A stretch of DNA of 64,000 nucleotides from Rebecca billardiae RCC1528. Taxonomy: Eukaryota; Protista; Haptophyta. Position numbers and translations under genes: made by a program. The notes beneath the pieces were generated by a model. That model was given only the letters and a program-made list of their open reading frames with translations. It was not told the origin of the DNA and searched no databases. Positions 25,766 to 60,324 of the stretch are shown here, piece by piece. The stretch lies in assembly GCA_965240325.2 (NCBI GenBank), contig OZ251238.1, forward strand, positions 930,001 through 994,000. The letters are read 5' to 3'. Position 1 is the stretch's first letter. The number at the start of each line of letters is the position of its first letter.

Positions 25766-26469
25766 CCCGCGGGGCCTGGTGGCGCTGTGTTGATGGAATA
25801 TGGTCCGAGCAGCACCGCGCGGGTGGTGCCTCCCGTGCCGCCGCCTGACTGCATGAAGCGGGGCGGCGCGCCGGCAGAGTTCCGTGGGGCCGTGTCCGCC
25901 GGGACGGTTACGTCATACGTACACGTGGCCGAGTCACAATACTGAGCATTGAGTAACTGAGAGTGAGTCCCGGCCGCCGGGCGCCGGGCCGGGGGCCCCG
26001 CGGGGCCCGCCCGGCGGCGGCGCCGTGGCCGCGGGCGGCCCGGTGACGCCGCGGGCGGCCCGGACGCCGCGGTCGGCGGTCAGCGGTGGCCCCAGCCAGG
26101 CCGGGACAGCCCAGGTGAGGCCGGTCAGACAGGCTGAGACTCGGAGGCCCGACCAGTGAGCGTTGCTGATAGGTACCGGCCTTACGGAGCACCTACTGGC
26201 CGCGGCGGGATCGGGCGATCGGCATCGTGCAGGTTGAGCGGCGAGGCTCATCAGGATTCAGGGTGGAGAATCAGAGCTCGTTCCGTTGACCGACCGCCGA
26301 GAACCCGGCCGCGTGCGAACTTCCACCAGTCCGGTGCATGTTTCATGTGCACAGCGCGTTCTGCGAGAAGGTTTTCGACCCACCGGCCGATCAATCGGTT
26401 CCTCACTGGCCAGTCGTAATTGCGCCGCAGCGAATCTACTGGCCGTCTGGCGTGCACGCGTCCCAGGAA

Positions 26470-27985
26470 ATGTGGAGGACCCTGCGCTTCCGCGCGATCG
26501 GCGCCTCCGCTGCCGCGGCGGGGTCGGCGCTGGGCTTCCGCCTGTACGATGGCGGGTTGACGGCGGCCGCCAGCGCCGACGGCCCGACTGCGGGCGGGCC
26601 GCACAAGCTCACCAAGCTGATCTCGCCCGTGCCGTCCGACATCGACATTGCTCAGGCGGCGACGGTGCTGCCGATCGACACGGTGGCGGCGCACGTGGGG
26701 ATTCTGCCCGACGAGCTCGAGCTGCACGGCAAGCACATGGCAAAGGTGTGCCTCGAGGTGCGCGACCGCCTCGCCGGCCACCCCGACGGCAACTACGTCG
26801 TCGTCACCGGCATCAACCCGACGCCGCTCGGCGAGGGCAAGTCGACGACCACGGTCGGTGTCTCTCAGGCGCTGGGTGCGCACCTCGGCGCGCGGGTGAT
26901 CACGTGCGTGCGGCAGCCGTCGATGGGCCCGACGTTCGGCATCAAGGGCGGCGCGGCCGGCGGCGGCTACGCGCAGGTCCTCCCGATGGAGGAGTTCAAC
27001 CTGCACATGACGGGCGACATCCACGCCATCACCGCGGCGAACAATTTGCTCGCGGCGGCGATCGACACGCGCATGTTCCACGAGCACACGCAGAAGGACC
27101 AGGCGCTGTTCGAGCGGCTGTGCCCGAGGCGGAAGGACGGCACGCGCCGCTTCGCGCCCGTCATGCTCAAGCGCCTCGAGAAGCTCGGCATCACGCCCGC
27201 AGTGCGTGGTAAGCCGCGGCCGCCGCCGCCGGGCGCGCTCGCTGGCATGCCTGCCCTTGACCCGTCGCTCGACTATGACCCGGAGTCGCTCACGGTGGAC
27301 GAGCGCGCGGCGTTCGCGCGGCTGGATCTGGACCCGTCGACCATCACGTGGAACCGCGTCGTCGACGTGAACGACCGCTTCCTGCGCAAGATCACCGTCG
27401 GGCAGGGCTCGGCGGAGAAAGGGATGACACGCGAGACTGTGCGCGCACGCGGCCGGCACCGCGCGCCGCGGCCGGGCTGTGCTGGGGCGGGGGAGGCGGC
27501 GGAGCCCGCGCGGCGGCACGCGCGCACGCCGCTCGCGCCGCGCCGCGCGCACGCGGCTGCACTCGGCGCGTGCGCACGCCGCCCGCGCTCACCACCGCCG
27601 TCTCCGCGCGCGCGCATGCGCGCCCGCGCCGCGCGCCCGCTCGGTCCGCGCCGCGACCCACCAGGGCTACGACATCTCTGTCGCATCTGAAATCATGGCC
27701 GTGCTGGCCCTGGCCACGGGGCTGTCGGACATGCGCACGCGGCTGGGGAACATGGTGGTCGGCGCGTCGCGCGCGCGGCTGCCGGTCAACGCCGACGACC
27801 TCGGCATCGGCGGCGCGCTCACCGTCCTGATGAAGGAAGCGATCAAGCCGACCCTGATGCAGACTCTGGAGGGGACGCCTGTTCTTGTGCACGCGGGCCC
27901 GTTCGCCAACATCGCGCACGGCAACTCGTCGATCATCGCGGACCAGATCGCGCTCAAGCTGGTCGGGCGTGACGGCTTCGTGGTG

Positions 27986-28029
<44 letters not shown>

Positions 28030-29565
28030 TAACATCAAGTGCCGCGCATCGGGTGCGTCGCCCGCGCGCGGCGCGGCGCGGCGCGCAGCGCAGCGCGGTG
28101 CACGGCGGCGCGGCGCGCAGCGCCTCGCGCGGCCGCGTGGGCGCGCGCGAGAGGAGAGGGAGAGCGCGCGCGCTTGAGCGTGCGTGCGTGGCACGCCGCG
28201 CGTGCCGCCACGCTGACGCGCGCGCGCACGCCCCGTGCACGCCGCGCGCGCGCGCGCGCACGCCCACCAGGCCTCAAGCCAAACTGTGTGCTGCTGGTCG
28301 CCACCGTGCGCGCGCTCAAGATGCACGGCGACGGCCCCAAGGTGGTGGCGGGGAAGGCCATCCCGAAGGAGTACACGGAGGAGAACCTGCCGCTGGTGGG
28401 CAAGGTGTGTGGCCCGCGCCCTCTGCCTCTGCGCGCGCGCCGTGCCCCTCGGGGCAGCACCGCCACGCGCGTGCGACGCCCGCGCGCGCGTGCAAGCGGT
28501 GCCTCCGTGCAAGCCTGGAGCTGCTTGGACGTGCCGGCAGCGGCTGTCACCACGCCCAGCCCGGCCGAGCCGCGGGAGAGCGTGCCGCTGGCTGCGACCG
28601 CTGGGTCTCTCGCGCGACGAGGCGTGCGCTGGGCACTCGCCCTCGCCCGCGCTCACTCGCGAGCCGCGGCCCTCTGTGCGCCTGTGGACGCTGCGCCGTC
28701 CGCCCGCGTTTGCGGCTGCTGCGCTGCGCGCTCGCTCGCGCCGTCCGCGCGCCGTCCGCTGCCTCAGGGTGTGACCAACATGCAGAAGCACATCAAGAAC
28801 GCGCACAAGTTCGGCGTGCCCGTCGTGGTGTGCGTGAACCGCTTCGCCACGGACACGGACGCGGAGATCGAGCTCGTGCGCGGCGCGGCGCTCTCGGCAG
28901 GCGCTGACGCGGCAGTTATTGGCGAGCACCACGCCAAGGGTGGCGCGGGCGCGGTGACGGTGGCGGAGGCTGTGAAGGCGGCGTGCGCCAAGTCGCGCGC
29001 ACTGGAGGCGAAGGGCCAGGGCGGCTTCAAGTACCTCTACGAGCTCGACCTGCCCATCAAGTCCAAGATCGAGACGATCGCCATGGATGTGCGCGCGCGC
29101 GCGCGCGTGCGCGAGCTGCGAGCAGCATGCGCCTCGCGGCCAGCCGGTCGGAGGGGGCGCCGTGAGGCCGGGCGCGGGGCGGCGCGCGCAAGCCCGGCTC
29201 ACACGCCCGATCCGCCGCCGCGCACGCACGCACGCGCCCGGCGCGGGGCGCAGATCTACGGCGCGGACGGCGTGACCTACTCACGCGAGGCGGAGGAGAA
29301 GATCAAGCTGTACACGGAGATGGGGTTCGACGCGCTGCCGATCTGCATGGCGAAGACGCAGTACTCGCTGACCGCGGAGGCGGACAAGAAGGGCGTGCCG
29401 ACGGGCTTCACGCTGCCCATCCAGGACGTGCGAGTGTCCGTGGGCGCCGGGTTCATCTACCCGCTGTGCGGCACGATGTCGACGATGCCGGGTCTGCCCA
29501 CGCGGCCTGCGTTCTACGACGTCGACGTGGACCCGAAGACGGGAAGGGTGCAAGGCCTCTTCTAA
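26470..29565 (+). CDS. FTHFS: Formate--tetrahydrofolate ligase (10-formyl-THF synthetase), probable mitochondrial presequence; multi-exon
   Basis: [110 protein letters not shown]; about 4 GT-AG introns. Confidence 0.97.
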
Positions 29566-35926: not shown

Positions 35927-36130
35927 GGGTAAAAGTCAAGGCCTCAAGCGCACGACCAACGGACCACGCCAGCTGGCAGTGCAGCAAAGCCGCCCGGAAA
36001 TCCGGAATCTGAAAAAACCGCCTCCGGCCCGGCTCCCGCCTCCCGGCTCGACCGACGACGGCGACGCCTGTTGCCGTTGGCTGATGTCTCAGACTCAGTG
36101 TGATCCGAGTGAGTGATGGTAACACCAAGC

Positions 36131-36229
36131 GAGGTCCGGGCCGGGAGCTCCCAGCGAGCGGCCAGCGCAACATCACCTCAAGGTTTTTCCCTGAGCTGCA
36201 GCTCGCTGGGAGCTCCCGGCCCGGACCTC
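36131..36229. repeat. Perfect 29-bp inverted repeat forming a ~100-nt hairpin (pre-miRNA-like or micro-MITE)
   Basis: GAGGTCCGGGCCGGGAGCTCCCAGCGAGC (36131-36159) / exact reverse complement (36201-36229), with partial additional pairing in the loop. Confidence 0.85.
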
Positions 36230-37099
36230 CCTTGCCCCGTTGGTAACTCGCAAGTCTGACAGTCTGTCACTCTGCTGGCAGCCAAGTGCCAACGCCAGCG
36301 GGCCAGCCAACTGCCAAGCCGTTACAGGCGTTACACGGCCACCGCCTCCGCCCTCCACGCGAGTCGCGAACGGCGAAGGGGAAGCGTGTTACGACTATAC
36401 AACGTTTATAACTTCATTCTTGGCAGACATGGCAGTCTTGGCTGCAGCCTGCGGCTGCAGGGCAGAGTCTGGCCGTTACGAGCCTCGCGGTACTTACGGA
36501 AGTACCGTTGATCGGTCCACTGAATCTGATATCGGACCCGCGGGGCGGACCGCGCCGCTTACCGTAACCGGACCGCCGGAGCCGGAGGCAACGCCAACGG
36601 TCATAAATCATAATTAAATACCGATATTCCAAAGTCACCAAAGTGACTAGTGAGGCCTGCGGCAGCACGGGTCCCGGCGGGCGGGCCGGCGGGACTGCAG
36701 CGCAGGCACGGATCATGCATTATTAAGAATTATGATGTACAGGCAATCGCGGGCAATAAGGAGCTGTCACGTTAAGAAACTGGGGCTTGCTATCTGCGGA
36801 TCTAGCCTAGAAACTGAGACTATCGATTGGCTGGTTCGCCATACGCATAGTCACACTAAGAAACCGGGACTACAGTCACTACACTGCTCTACAGTCGTCG
36901 CGGCTGACGAGACTCACGAACGAGCTAGTGGTGATTGATGGTCGACGCCGAGGCGCAGTCGGCCCGTGGGACGCGGCGCGCGGCCCGACTACGAGTACAG
37001 CCTACAGGCCAAGTCCCGACTTCTCCTGATGACGGACTCCTGGCCAGTGGCACCGCAGCATCCATGCAACACCATGCCACCGATTAATTCATTGCTCCA

Positions 37100-40136: not shown

Positions 40137-41588
40137 ATGGACTTCAAGACCTTCGCTTCGACTGTCCCGATCATTCCCTTCAGCCGGCGGCGGCGCCAAT
40201 CCGTGACTGGGCTGAGCGTTCGCGGCATGCCGCGCTTTGGCAGCTTCGACTCGCACCGCCGACAGGAGGACGCGGCAGCGCAGCTGGAGAGCGGCGAGGG
40301 CTCGGGGCGCAAGCCGTCGATGGTGCGCTCGCAGACCTTGCACCGGGTCAGGCGAGACTGGCAGTCCGTGCCTCCGCAGGTCTTCGACCAGAACGTGCGC
40401 GCATGGCGCGCGCTCTCGCTGCTGTGGTGGCGCGCGGAGAAGAACGGCGACGTGCGGATGCGCTGGTTCATGCCCGCGCTCGAGATGGTGTGCCTCACGG
40501 CGCAGCTGGCGTACTGGATCTGGTACTCCGTGGTGAGCTGGGCCCTGCTCCCGTGCCTCGCCGGCATCGCCTTCTGCTGCGCAGTCACGCTGCTCGCGCT
40601 CACTGCGCGCCAGACGATGCTGCTCTGCCACCCGGGGCTCGGTGTACTCGTGCAGCTCTCGGCGCGCGTCGAGGTGCCGCCGCGGAGGCGGCGGCGGATG
40701 CGGCTCCGGCTGGCGGTGCTCCGCCTGCTCGGCCTCTCGCAGTTCCTCTACTTCGCCTTCTTCCTCCCGTACCTCCGCTCGTTCACGCCGCTGCGGACGG
40801 TGATTGATAACGTGCCGCCCGCGGTGTTCTGGGCAGCCGCCGGGCAGCCGCCGACGCGGTGGGAGGTGTTCCTCGCGGACACGGTGATGCTCTTCACGAA
40901 CGCGGTGCTCTTCACCCAGCTCTTCGACTACCTCTTCGCCCTCTCCGCGGGCGCCGACTTCGTCCACGCCATCGTCGACGAGTTCAAGGACGCGGTCTGC
41001 AACACGAACCCGTCCGCGCAGGAGGACTGGGAGGCGCGCGTGGGGCCGCTCGTGCATGCGCTGCAGGCGGACCTGCTCGCGCCGCTGTCCGACTGGTTCG
41101 CCACGGGCTTCAGCTCGCTCACGGGCTCGCTCGTCGCCATGTCCTTCGCCATGCTGTGCATCGCCGCGAACGCGTCGCACCCGCACCTCGACGGCTGGCA
41201 ATTCTCCATGGAAGCGAACTTGGTCCTATACCAGCTGTTCATCGTGCTGCTGATCTCGGCGGTGCCCGCGACGCTCACGACCTCGGTCGGCGGGCTGATC
41301 GAGGAGCTCAACGCGCTCAGGGTGACGCGCTCGCAGAGCTCGCGCGGCTTCGCCTCGACCGAGGTGAACGACCGCGTGAACACCCTCGTCCACTACCTCC
41401 GCAACCTGAACAACGGCCAAGGACCCGGCTTCGTCGTGCAGGTGCCGTTCCTCGACGCGGTCGTGATCTCGGCGCAGTGGCTCGTGCGCTCCGGCACGCA
41501 GCTGTACGCACTGCTCTTCGTCGCGCTGAAGTTCCTGGTCCCCGCGGCGATCACTCCCGCGGCGGCGGCGACCACGACGACAACGTGA
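40137..41588 (+). CDS. Multi-pass (~7 TM) membrane protein resembling the GRL/DUF3537 (7TM ion channel) superfamily
   Basis: About 7 hydrophobic segments, no signal peptide, C-terminal LVHYLRNLNNGQGPGFVV...AVVISAQWLVRSGTQLYALLFVALKF; intronless. Confidence 0.55.
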   Translation: MDFKTFASTVPIIPFSRRRRQSVTGLSVRGMPRFGSFDSHRRQEDAAAQLESGEGSGRKPSMVRSQTLHRVRRDWQSVPPQVFDQNVRAWRALSLLWWRAEKNGDVRMRWFMPALEMVCLTAQLAYWIWYSVVSWALLPCLAGIAFCCAVTLLALTARQTMLLCHPGLGVLVQLSARVEVPPRRRRRMRLRLAVLRLLGLSQFLYFAFFLPYLRSFTPLRTVIDNVPPAVFWAAAGQPPTRWEVFLADTVMLFTNAVLFTQLFDYLFALSAGADFVHAIVDEFKDAVCNTNPSAQEDWEARVGPLVHALQADLLAPLSDWFATGFSSLTGSLVAMSFAMLCIAANASHPHLDGWQFSMEANLVLYQLFIVLLISAVPATLTTSVGGLIEELNALRVTRSQSSRGFASTEVNDRVNTLVHYLRNLNNGQGPGFVVQVPFLDAVVISAQWLVRSGTQLYALLFVALKFLVPAAITPAAAATTTTT

Positions 41589-41760
41589 TCATCGGCGCTG
41601 GCACGGGCAGCAGCTGTCGCATTCTGAGTTTGAAATATGAATTATTATTATGATATACGACAATCTCGGAATAATGGCTTAATAATAATGCAGCATTGCC
41701 TGCTGCTGATGCTCCGTATTTTAATTTTTATTATAAATATAGTTAGCATAATAAGTTACA

Positions 41761-42008
41761 GCTGCTACAGCTTGCTTACTGAGTAACTTACTCTCTGACG
41801 CTTGCGCCCGTTGCATACCACGTCGTTAATATATGATACGTACGACCATTTTATTTAAATATATGTTATATAACCGCTATTTTCATAGCTGATTAAGCAG
41901 TCGTAAATAATAATAATAATAATAAATTGTTATAAATAATTATGACCGCCATATATTAACGACGTGGTATGCAACGGGCAGGCGTCAGAGTCAGCAAGCT
42001 GTAGCAGC
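41761..42008. repeat. AT-rich foldback/MITE-like element with interrupted ~60-75-bp inverted arms
   Basis: Perfect 30-bp core 41806-41835 / 41950-41979 plus outer GCTGCTACAGCTTGCT / AGCAAGCTGTAGCAGC; no TSD seen. Confidence 0.8.
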
Positions 42009-57258: not shown

Positions 57259-59178
57259 CTATTCGTCGGCCCCGGGATGATCGACCTGCCGGAGGGCGAG
57301 AAGCAGGCGCGCGGCCGCCAACCTCTTCGCCTCCTTCTTCGTGCGGGCCGTCGCGCGCCCCTCCTCCCGACGCAGCTGCGACTCGTACACGAGTCGCACC
57401 TCATGCGCTGCGCTCGCACCGGCCGCAGGCGCGCTCGTCTCGTGCAGGTCGACCTTGGTCCACCGGCAGAAGAGCATGAGCGTGGCGAGCGCGCCGGCGG
57501 AGCTATCGGCGGGGCCGATGGCGGCGAGCTTGCGAAGCGCGGTCTGCTCGCGGGCCACCGCCGCCTTGCGGCCGGCCGCCACCGCAGCCGGGTCCCTTGT
57601 CCCGGCCGGCAGTGCAGCACGCGCGCGCGCGACCTCGACGGCGTGCGCTGCTGCCTCGTGCTCCATGTCAGCGAGCAGCGCGACCGGCCGGTCCTGCCTC
57701 TCGGCGAGCACGACGAAGCTACTGCCCGCCTGCCGCGCGCGCCCGCGGCCCTGCACGAACGAGACGGCGTGCTGCATGGGGTCGAAGCGGATCACGCAGT
57801 TCGCGGCGGGCACGTCCACACCCTCCTCGGCGGCGGAGGTCGCGATGAGCAGGTTGGTGGCGCCGCTCGAGAAGTCTGCAAGGCGCTGCGCCGCCTGTGC
57901 GCGCGAGACGGAGAGCGACGGCGTGGCAGGCGACGAGCTGGCGTACAGGCACGCGCTGCGCACGCGGCCGGCGAGGTCTGCGTCGGCGGCGATGACGTGC
58001 GCGAGGATGTGCGTCATGACGCGCTGCTGCACGAAGACGATCCCTCGAAAGGCGCGTGCGTCCTCGCCAATCTTGTCGAGCAGCACCTCGACCAGGTTGT
58101 CGAAACGCGCGTGCGAGGGCGCGGACGCGGCCCAGAACGCCCGCCTCGCCGCGAGCGCGCTGTGCGGCCAGCGTGCGGCCGCGGCAGCCGCCTCGTCGTC
58201 GAGGCCGTACATGCGGAGGAACTCGGTGGCCGCGTCCTCTGCCGCCTCCCAGCTGGTGACGAGCAGCCGCAGGGCCTCGTACCAGTGCTCCAGCTCCGCG
58301 CAACGCCCGCTGCGGGAGCCTAGCCGGCTGGCATACGCGCCCCACTCACGCACTGCCAGCCGCCGCAGCGCGGACTCGAACTCGGGCAGCTCCTCCTTCG
58401 CGGCCGCCTCGAGCGAGCGGACGACTGCGACAAGGCGCAAGGCGAATGCGCTCGCCTCGCCGGTGCGCACGCGCTCAAAGAAGGTCGCCTCCATCAGGTG
58501 CTGCGGCGGGCGCGTGGCGGTGCCGGCGTCGGCAGGCGCGGACCTCATCACGATGTCCGGCGTGCGCACCTCCGCCACAAGCCGCGTCGCGTGGTACCCG
58601 CCGGCGACGAGCTCCTCGCTGCTGGCGTGCTCCACAGCGTCGATGAGCAGGTCATCGCAGAGCTGGCGCACGGCGGCCTGCACCTTGCCCGCGCTGACGG
58701 CGTAGGTGAGCGAGGCGGTGAGGCCGAGGACGCGGGGCCGCGAGTCCGCGCGCTGCAGGGTCCTGGCGAGCTTGCGGTACGGGTGCTCCTTGAGCACGTG
58801 GTGCACCTCGTCGAACACCACGAGCCCGAACGAGCCCCAGCTGAGGCGCTCGTGCCGCGCCTGCGCCGCCTCGAACGCCTTGGGCGTCGCGACGAGGATG
58901 TCAAAGGCGGGCGCGAGAGACACGCCGCCCATGAACTCGGCGACGTCCATGCCACTCCACTCGCGGATGGCGGCAGCCTGCTGCGAGACGAGTAGGCACG
59001 TGGGCACCAGGAAAAGCGAGGGCCGCTCGCACTGCGCCGCGCACGCGGCGGCGATCAGCGTCTTGCCGGCGCCGGTGGGCAGCAGGACAATGGTGTTCTT
59101 CTCGACGGCGGTCTTGACGATGCGTTGCTGGTACGGGCGCAGCGCGGCCTTGGGCGCGATCCGTGAGTGGAGCGGCAT
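57259..59178 (-). CDS. Dicer/RIG-I-like DExD/H helicase with C-terminal dsRBD/DUF283-like domain; no PAZ or RNase III
   Basis: LRPYQ, NTIVLLPTGAGKTLIA, LVVFDEVHHVLKEHPY, LGLTAS, RGIVFVQQR, NLLIATSAAEEGVDVPAANCVIRFD, SFVQGRGRAR; C-terminal GALATLMLFC...ARTKKEAKRLAAARLLLAL; intronless, 639 aa. Confidence 0.9.
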   Translation of the reverse strand: MPLHSRIAPKAALRPYQQRIVKTAVEKNTIVLLPTGAGKTLIAAACAAQCERPSLFLVPTCLLVSQQAAAIREWSGMDVAEFMGGVSLAPAFDILVATPKAFEAAQARHERLSWGSFGLVVFDEVHHVLKEHPYRKLARTLQRADSRPRVLGLTASLTYAVSAGKVQAAVRQLCDDLLIDAVEHASSEELVAGGYHATRLVAEVRTPDIVMRSAPADAGTATRPPQHLMEATFFERVRTGEASAFALRLVAVVRSLEAAAKEELPEFESALRRLAVREWGAYASRLGSRSGRCAELEHWYEALRLLVTSWEAAEDAATEFLRMYGLDDEAAAAAARWPHSALAARRAFWAASAPSHARFDNLVEVLLDKIGEDARAFRGIVFVQQRVMTHILAHVIAADADLAGRVRSACLYASSSPATPSLSVSRAQAAQRLADFSSGATNLLIATSAAEEGVDVPAANCVIRFDPMQHAVSFVQGRGRARQAGSSFVVLAERQDRPVALLADMEHEAAAHAVEVARARAALPAGTRDPAAVAAGRKAAVAREQTALRKLAAIGPADSSAGALATLMLFCRWTKVDLHETSAPAAGASAAHEVRLVYESQLRREEGRATARTKKEAKRLAAARLLLALRQVDHPGADE

Positions 59179-59379
59179 GGACGGTCAAGTGCGAGTCAGG
59201 GTCAAGAGTGGTCAACGTCTCGTGTGTGATCGACTTGAGACTGATCGTGACCCGGATTCCTCCGGCAGGGGCAGGTGGGGGCGAGTGGTGACCCACCGGG
59301 CGGTCGCTCCGCACTGGCGACCCCCCATTATTTTGATCTTCTGGCGGGAACTTGGAGAACAGGTCAACAGGACAGCCAG

Positions 59380-60324
59380 ATGGCGGCCGACCCGCTCACA
59401 CGTCTGCTCGAGGCAGCTGACAAGACGATCCTCAGCGTGGGCTCGGGCGACGGCTCGCAGCAGGCTGCCATCGTCGCTCGCGGGCACCGCAACGTGACCA
59501 CCACCTTCTTCGACTCTCGAGCAGCGCTGCTCGCCAAGTACCCACAGTCGGCACCGGCCAGCCTGCGCGTGCTCGAGGGCGCCGCGCGTCCGCCTCTCTT
59601 CGAGGTCGACGCGACCAATCTGCAGTCGTACGGGCTTGGCATGTTCGACATCTGCATCTTCTCCTTCCCGCACACGGGCGTGCCCAATAACGATCCCAAC
59701 AACGTCGCTTCGAACCGCGCGCTGCTCACCGGCTTTTTGCGCTCGGTGCAGCACGTGCTTAAGCCTGACGGACAGGTGCAGATCACACTCAAGACGGGCG
59801 AGCCGTACGATCGATGGGAGCTGCCCAGGCTCTTGAGTGACGAGTGCGACCTTCACTTGACCTCGACGCACCCGCTCGACAAGTCGCAGTTCACCGGCTA
59901 TGTGCACCGCCTCACCGTCGGCGCGACCGGCAAGATGACGCAGGTGCGCGACAAGGGCGCCAAGGTCTACTCCTTCGAGCGGCGCCAGCCCGCCAACGCC
60001 GAGCCGACTGTCGCGCAGCTGCCGCTCTCGACGTCCGCGTCCGTCGTCATCGTCGCGCTGCTGCACGCGGCCCTCAGCTATGCTGAAGTCGAGACAATGA
60101 TCGGCGAGGTCCTTCACGCGGCACGTGGCGAGGCTGAGAGTCTGAGCGTGCTCGACATTCGCAGGCGGGCGGCGGGCAGGTGCAAGATCGCCTGCGCCAC
60201 ACTGCCTGACACGCGTCAGATGAACCGGGTGCTGTACGCGATGGAGCACAAGGGCTGTGCATGCCGAGGGGGCTCCCGGGCGGGTCGCGGGATGAAGCCG
60301 GCCTGGATGGCACCCGCCGAGTGA
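59380..60324 (+). CDS. DUF2431/Bmt5-like SAM-dependent RNA methyltransferase fused to a C-terminal Z-alpha winged-helix domain
   Basis: ILSVGSGDGS, LLAKYP, FEVDATNL, FDICIFSFPHTG, NRALLTGFLRS, ITLKTGEPYDRW (DUF2431); C-terminal TRQMNRVLYAMEHKG...KPAW (compare ADAR1 Z-alpha KKEINRVLYSLAKKG...PPLW); intronless. Confidence 0.8.
   Translation: MAADPLTRLLEAADKTILSVGSGDGSQQAAIVARGHRNVTTTFFDSRAALLAKYPQSAPASLRVLEGAARPPLFEVDATNLQSYGLGMFDICIFSFPHTGVPNNDPNNVASNRALLTGFLRSVQHVLKPDGQVQITLKTGEPYDRWELPRLLSDECDLHLTSTHPLDKSQFTGYVHRLTVGATGKMTQVRDKGAKVYSFERRQPANAEPTVAQLPLSTSASVVIVALLHAALSYAEVETMIGEVLHAARGEAESLSVLDIRRRAAGRCKIACATLPDTRQMNRVLYAMEHKGCACRGGSRAGRGMKPAWMAPAE

Follow-up and report, generated by a model that had tools for sequence, protein, structure and literature searches.

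The start codon of a Dicer/RIG-I-like helicase gene in the haptophyte Rebecca billardiae was probably donated by an inverted copy of its own codons

Introduction

Template switching is a known source of reverse-complement repeats, and one event of this kind can provide a transcript with an RNA hairpin at the same time (Monttinen and Loytynoja 2022, PMC8794818). Hairpins of microRNAs (miRNAs) that arose de novo by template switch (PMC10710096) and inverted repeats that expanded in yeast promoters (PMC13100816) have been described as well. Here we analyze an inverted repeat at the 5' end of a gene for a Dicer/RIG-I-like helicase of Rebecca billardiae RCC1528, which lies within a stretch of 64,000 nucleotides (nt) of contig OZ251238.1 (the window; G+C ~70%; coordinates below are window positions). 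The repeat resembles template-switch mutations in being a near-perfect reverse-complement copy of tens of bases with its source nearby, 182 nt away in this case, and in combining a conserved source with a lineage-specific target and later mismatches. It differs from them in that the target is the 5' end of a coding gene, to which the copy would have supplied the start codon and the first eight codons, and in that reconstruction of the event is blocked, there being no close outgroup. The kind of mutational event is thus a known one, whereas its outcome, a start codon donated by the antisense of the gene's own coding sequence, is unusual.

In the mRNA, the two copies are predicted to pair with each other over the AUG, which invites comparison with start regions in which structure is known to matter. 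Hairpins of about -50 kcal/mol reportedly inhibited eukaryotic scanning in the experiments of Kozak. The helicase stem, which has about -56 kcal/mol and includes the AUG, falls in the range that depresses cap-dependent initiation, although the hairpins of Kozak were compact, synthetic and located in the leader, whereas the helicase stem would form over a long range, and all mRNAs of the organism are very GC-rich. In the phages MS2 and Q-beta, the start of the replicase gene is paired to a sequence within the coat gene (the 'Min Jou' interaction) and is freed once the partner segment is translated. The helicase stem is similar in that an initiation region pairs with coding sequence far away from it and would be released by ribosomes passing there. 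However, the Min Jou interaction is bacterial, is based on the Shine-Dalgarno sequence and couples two genes, whereas the partner of the helicase start lies downstream in the same eukaryotic open reading frame (ORF), the translation of which would, unlike in the phages, keep its own start open. Finally, the Microprocessor is autoregulated through cleavage of the 5' hairpins of the Dgcr8 mRNA by Drosha-DGCR8, which has been reported in many species and cell types (PMC3814725). As in Dgcr8, the helicase transcript would be the mRNA of a protein of a double-stranded RNA (dsRNA) pathway with a stem in its 5' or start region that its own pathway could recognize. By contrast, the hairpins of Dgcr8 are local stem-loops that resemble primary miRNA transcripts and have been shown to be cleaved, whereas the helicase stem is predicted, long-range (182-nt loop) and found in one lineage, and the helicase protein, unlike in the Microprocessor case, has no RNase III domain.

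A near-perfect inverted repeat covers the start codon

The helicase gene (57259..59178, minus strand) is a single-exon ORF that encodes a protein of 639 aa. An inverted-repeat search and a separate scan count both identify two arms of 29 nt, which are complementary at 26 of 29 positions and lie 182 nt apart. The 5' arm (59155..59183, minus strand) corresponds to mRNA positions -5 to +24 and comprises codons M1-A8 (MPLHSRIA), ATG included, preceded by 5 nt of leader. The 3' arm (58944..58972, minus strand; mRNA positions +207 to +235) consists of codons A70-D78 (AIREWSGMD), located just after motif Ia. In addition to the 26 Watson-Crick pairs, the arms form one wobble pair, G59173.U58954, and two mismatches, A59164/C58963 and C59158/C58969. 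An earlier examination of the same DNA from its letters alone (the sequence-only reading) had proposed an inverted repeat of 28 nt with 25 of 28 positions identical, and this is contained in the longer repeat measured here; the G-U pair that it counted among the three differences corresponds to G59173.U58954. It had also placed all three differences at third codon positions in both reading frames. The placement is correct, but since third positions face third positions throughout this register, it amounts to one observation, not two.

The stem extends somewhat beyond the repeat. Past a 1-nt bulge, C59184, three further pairs join 59185-59187 to 58941-58943, resulting in a computed stem of 30 pairs with a duplex energy of -56 kcal/mol, 19 of them uninterrupted. 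The outermost three bases of the upstream strand coincide with an in-frame TGA (59185..59187, minus strand) 9 nt upstream of the ATG. The stem is present in the minimum free energy (MFE) fold of 331 nt (z = -4.8); folding of the first ~300 nt had been suggested as a check by the sequence-only reading. In folded contexts of 330 to 1350 nt the bases of the AUG have a predicted pair probability of 1.00, which bears out the claim that the AUG would be buried by pairing across a loop, estimated then at ~185 nt and now measured at 182 nt.

Chance was assessed with eight block shuffles of the whole 64-kb window, in which inverted repeats within 400 nt were scored. Three local repeats of at least 26/29 are found in the window as opposed to none in the eight shuffles, which all together produced a single repeat at the relaxed level of at least 24/29; a chance origin is excluded by this control. 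The remaining two real repeats are intergenic, and the helicase repeat is the sole one in coding sequence within the window. Furthermore, Logan contigs from two other sequencing runs (L004 and L005), which served as an independent assembly check, are identical to the window across the repeat region, and the repeat is therefore not an assembly artefact. The two contigs differ from the window at 2 and 0 sites, respectively, in 7048 bases. Since 3 of 29 positions differ between the arms, the age of the repeat far exceeds that of the present polymorphism, and the repeat is fixed in what has been sampled.

The internal codons are the source and the 5' end is the copy

The direction of copying is apparent from an alignment of the first 110-130 residues with 24 homologues. 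The block encoded by the 3' arm, QQAxAIRxW(S/T)G, is conserved and follows directly on motif Ia. Most of the homologues begin with M-x-LRxYQ, and the closest one (P0002, 61% identical) begins with MLTLRPYQ. In the window protein, the conserved LRPYQ is preceded by an N-terminal extension of 12 codons (59143..59178, minus strand; MPLHSRIAPKAA), which is lacking in the closest homologue. The 5' arm has no counterpart in P0002 and in most of the 24 homologues and is lineage-specific. Since the 3' arm is conserved and the 5' arm is lineage-specific, the internal codons 70-78 represent the source and the 5' end represents the target. The conserved 3' arm and the extension without a counterpart together support the alternative offered by the sequence-only reading, namely, that an inverted duplication made the present N-terminus. 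The composition of the source explains how it could donate a start: its codons GGC ATG GAC (Gly-Met-Asp) contain CATG, and because CATG is its own reverse complement, the mirror copy also carries an ATG, which is now the start codon (59176..59178, minus strand). The palindromic CATG block around the start codon pairs with the CATG of the Met77 codon (58948..58950, minus strand), from which it was mirrored. This codon, inside the 3' arm, is the next in-frame ATG of the gene, and residue 77 is Leu in most homologues but Met in the window protein. A tandem duplication of the Q-motif codons was considered as another origin of the extension and rejected, with an alignment score of 13 that is reached by 42% of random in-frame 39-mers of the gene.

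We consider it probable, with a rough probability of 0.6, that a single inverted copying event made the present start and that the stem is its tolerated by-product. The event would have occurred at the DNA level, either as a template switch during replication, with fold-back copying of the complementary or the nascent strand, or as an equivalent small inverted duplication, and would have placed an antisense copy of codons 70-78, ~29-33 nt long, at the 5' end of the gene, replacing the ancestral 5' end and start. The copied ATG, being in frame with the helicase, would have become the present start codon, followed by the rest of the lineage-specific MPLHSRIA, and three synonymous third-position changes would then have eroded the repeat. 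The by-product would be an mRNA stem of 30 bp and -56 kcal/mol over the AUG with a 182-nt loop. Judging from what is generally known of scanning and of long-range start pairing, such a stem probably lowers or delays cap-dependent initiation. It may be opened by scanning helicases or by any ribosome passing codons 70-78, again from general knowledge, and an mRNA under translation would tend to keep its own start accessible. A dedicated regulatory role of the stem is probably absent.

The differences between the arms can be compared with the DNA of four homologues: the closest one, on the metagenome contig L001 (61% identity), and L086, L087 and L088. The 3' arm of L001 has GCG at the C.C mismatch and AGC at the G.U pair, that is, the very bases that would pair with the 5' arm of the window. 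At the A.C mismatch, the CGC of the window is common to 3 of the 4 relatives, which suggests that TCG became TCA in the 5' arm. The pattern as a whole fits an originally perfect copy that subsequently lost three pairs by synonymous substitutions, the polarization being weak because four-fold sites are near saturation between the window gene and L001 (48.5% identical versus 37% by chance). Complementarity is retained at 7 of the 10 third-to-third pairs, compared with 42% expected by chance (p ~0.07), a proportion that does not date the event.

Several observations weigh against a single copying event with the stem as its tolerated by-product. First, the 23 remaining positions of the 5' arm are unchanged, and the chance that 3 of 3 changes fall on synonymous sites under neutrality is ~(10.7/33.7)^3 = 0.03 by our own estimate; the 5' arm appears to be under some constraint, either on the peptide or on the pairing. 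Selection on pairing could produce the same pattern, since only third-to-third mismatches could later be compensated. Second, among windows with a GC content of 0.60-0.70 in the duplex survey described below, 0.4% reach the duplex energy of the helicase. Third, among the 92 possible partners of the L001 start region, the AIRxW segment of that gene pairs best (-48 kcal/mol). Finally, the nearest relative is 61% identical, with a 5' region that does not align to that of the window gene and with synonymous sites close to saturation; for want of a close outgroup, the ancestral 5' end is beyond reconstruction and the case for a template switch is indirect. As regards the first of these points, coding constraint explains the pattern in the 5' arm as well, and it would also support ATG 59178 as the true start.

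The stem in the context of the genome and of the homologues

The duplex energy was compared with a survey of 6364 windows of 40 nt on both strands, each scored for its best duplex with the next 300 nt. The median of the best duplexes is -45.6 kcal/mol and 14% of the windows reach the value of the helicase, -57 kcal/mol, or lower. The first ATGs of 24 long ORFs were used as a crude proxy for gene starts, and among these two have a stronger duplex than the helicase, which has the highest mean pairing probability, with four of the other putative starts having an AUG paired with a probability of at least 0.98. Since such duplexes are common in the genome, the translation machinery of the organism must cope routinely with comparable energies. 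The stem is thus only partly exceptional, and what distinguishes it is its near-perfect, dsRNA-like continuity, not its absolute energy.

Folding of the region from -50 to +280 relative to the ATG (330 nt) sets the window gene, with a z-score of -4.1, apart from the four homologues, with z-scores of -0.5, +0.5, -1.0 and +0.1. The MFE fold of L001 contains no pairing of the start with the AIRxW segment, and neither conservation nor covariation of the stem was found among the four homologues (z from -1.0 to +0.5). Likewise, a search of Rfam returned two insignificant matches, none of them on either arm. The sequence-only reading had suggested covariation in orthologues as a check on a functional stem, and in this respect it fared poorly, the stem not being kept in the four homologues: L001 has only a weak match of 21/28, which is absent from its MFE fold. 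In this match, the Q-motif codons of L001 (TLRPYQKRI; L001:3007-3034) are complementary to the AIRDWSGLSV codons (L001:3200-3227) in the same register as in the window repeat. In the third-facing-third register Ile faces Ile, Arg faces Arg, Gln faces Trp and Pro faces Gly, and the complementarity in L001 is partly due to the genetic code, which makes the antisense of IRxWxG resemble RPYQxRI. The three more distant homologues have complementary fractions of 0.26, 0.46 and 0.58, that is, no match between the start and the AIRxW segment. A stem between start and AIRxW common to the whole family is therefore not supported, the pairing in L001 lying outside the MFE fold (z -0.5) and the three others showing nothing. 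It is a speculation that an ancestral quasi-palindrome could have seeded the template switch. A scan of metagenomes with the N-terminal alignment, which amounts to a generic P-loop pattern, yielded, among the matches listed, distant and mostly prokaryote-like helicases with 29-49% identity. In L001, a short out-of-frame upstream ATG (L001:2990-3007; ATGCCAGTGCCATGCTGA) overlaps the start codon and shares its first five bases, ATGCC, with the window start codon.

The helicase and the possibility of a regulatory stem

The protein clearly belongs, by sequence, to the Dicer/RIG-I-like (RLR) type of superfamily 2 (SF2) helicases and is a stand-alone enzyme with a Hel1 and Hel2 core, not a true Dicer. 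Pfam domains ResIII, DEAD and Helicase_C are recognized in it, and its closest relatives of solved structure are an ancestral Dicer helicase construct (E 1.4e-36), plant DCL1, LGP2, animal Dicers and MDA5. RNase III, PAZ and RLR C-terminal domains were absent from the Pfam results. Within its last 110 residues, the protein matches the dsRNA-binding domain (dsRBD) family dsrm with an E value of 0.009 and 17 bits, below the Pfam cut-off of 23 bits, and Dicer_dimer with an E value of 0.047, likewise below threshold. A dsRNA-handling role is likely for a helicase of this kind. The label of a dsRNA-binding helicase given by the sequence-only reading therefore holds as far as the Dicer/RIG-I-like type is concerned, whereas its binding part leans on a C-terminal dsRBD match that stays under the threshold.

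With such a protein as the product, the stem could be a selected cis-regulatory element that hides the AUG and is modulated by the helicase itself, by other dsRNA-binding proteins or by viral dsRNA in a feedback loop. This explanation shares the origin by inverted duplication but has the stem kept for its function, and the stem might also be diced into small RNAs. The predicted stem is very stable, its AUG is fully paired in every context folded, its energy is in the top 0.4% for windows of the same GC content and its start region has the highest mean pairing of the 24 surveyed. Moreover, the repeat has persisted far longer than the current polymorphism, and while third-position pairs have drifted, none of the 19 first- and second-position pairs has changed, which may reflect constraint (p ~0.03, our own estimate). 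The placement of the protein in a dsRNA-handling Dicer/RLR helicase family and the precedent of Drosha cleaving the 5' hairpins of Dgcr8 mRNA (PMC3814725) are in line with regulation as well. However, the third-position pattern is explained equally well by coding constraint on both arms, and 2 of the 3 later changes (A.C and C.C) break pairs and are uncompensated. Furthermore, the extra structure is conserved in 0 of the 4 homologues with DNA, equal duplex energies are common in the genome, and the dsRBD match that would tie the protein to its own stem is below threshold. On balance, we regard selection for a regulatory stem as rather unlikely, and the feedback switch, which would be thermodynamically possible, as unsupported but not refuted.

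A more specific version of regulation is a long shot: the mirror copy would have been kept since the helicase mRNA carries its own 30-bp dsRNA ligand over the AUG, so that free helicase or competing viral dsRNA would set the helicase output. If true, a self-titrating innate-immunity circuit would have arisen in a microalga from one template-switch event; more generally, a functional stem would mean that a little-studied lineage of algae controls a Dicer/RLR-family protein by a simple feedback device. What the evidence supports is an origin of the start by inverted copying; it does not support regulation.

The 5' end of the gene model

Between the in-frame TGA and Met77, the helicase ORF has a single ATG, at 59178. 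With the TGA 9 nt ahead of it and Met77 as the following in-frame ATG, ATG 59178 is the only one in the ORF that gives a protein with both the Q motif and the GAGKT motif. As no other ATG gives a protein with motifs Q and I, both arms are expected, from the ORF, to be part of the mature transcript. The helicase promoter and leader must lie within the divergent intergenic region of 201 nt (59179..59379) shared with a gene for a BMT5-like methyltransferase (ATG 59380, plus strand).

The gene model would be wrong at its 5' end if translation began at 59326-59328 and an intron of 150 nt with GT..AG borders (~59146-59295) removed the 5' arm, or if the transcript started inside the arm. The genome does have introns, for example a GC-rich GT..AG intron in the formate-tetrahydrofolate ligase (FTHFS) gene (26338-29565). 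In addition, an in-frame ATG is located exactly 150 nt upstream, and splicing from a GT at 59295 to an AG at 59147-59146 would keep the frame. Against this, the ORF has no interruption and its alignment with single-ORF homologues extends over 97% of its length, the same ATG was chosen by the gene caller on two independent contigs, and the alternative N-terminus is supported by no homologue. The restriction of changes in the 5' arm to third positions also fits a translated sequence, and homologous contigs of transcript size have 120-145 nt ahead of the ATG, making a transcript start inside the arm unlikely. We therefore give an erroneous 5' end only a slim chance.

The last alternative, chance complementarity in a GC-rich and codon-biased gene aided by the partly antisense motifs RPYQxRI and IRxWxG, can appeal to the 21/28 complementarity of Q-motif and AIRDWSG codons in L001, where there is no duplication, and to the 42% of the time that random third positions of the helicase gene are complementary, but it is effectively refuted by the absence of repeats of at least 26/29 from all eight whole-window block shuffles and has to face the match of 19 of 19 first- and second-position pairs as well as the low agreement of the window Q-motif codons with the 3' arm (~10/25 in a hand alignment), the matching segment being the non-conserved extension.

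Neighbouring features of the window

The upstream ATG at 59326-59328 (minus strand) is in frame with the helicase and opens a frame of 38 codons that ends at a TGA (59212-59214), 33 nt before the main ATG. The frame 59212-59328 would be an upstream ORF if the transcript starts upstream of it, and it is also the only candidate for an alternative first exon. On the other side of the divergent intergenic region lies the BMT5-like methyltransferase gene (59380-60324, plus strand; Pfam E 5e-31), 201 nt from the helicase ATG. In L001 the neighbour of the orthologue is a Glyco_transf_61 gene, and the pairing of helicase and BMT5-like genes is thus not syntenic there. The FTHFS gene (plus strand) is split over at least three reading frames; its intron starts with GTGCGC just after the codons for GMTRET (~27437), ends at an AG and is extremely GC-rich. 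Because the gene is split by a GT..AG intron, the genome has GC-rich spliceosomal introns.

Two further inverted repeats stand out within the window. A GC-rich intergenic hairpin at 36124-36236, with arms of ~27 matching bases or more (26/29 in the scan), has the strongest local duplex energy of the whole window, -83 kcal/mol. An AT-rich island of ~300 nt at 41640-41985, in surroundings of 70% GC and just downstream of the ORF 40137-41588, is bounded by a perfect terminal inverted repeat of 27 nt (~41805-41831 and 41954-41980) and looks like a small insertion resembling a miniature inverted-repeat transposable element.

Implications

If the preferred origin by inverted copying is correct, one small inverted event would have given a Dicer/RIG-I-like helicase both a new start codon and a new N-terminus, for which the antisense of its own codons was the template, and at the same time a long dsRNA-like stem over the start. 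The helicase gene of R. billardiae would thus be a clean natural example of templated mutation as a source of N-termini and mRNA structures.

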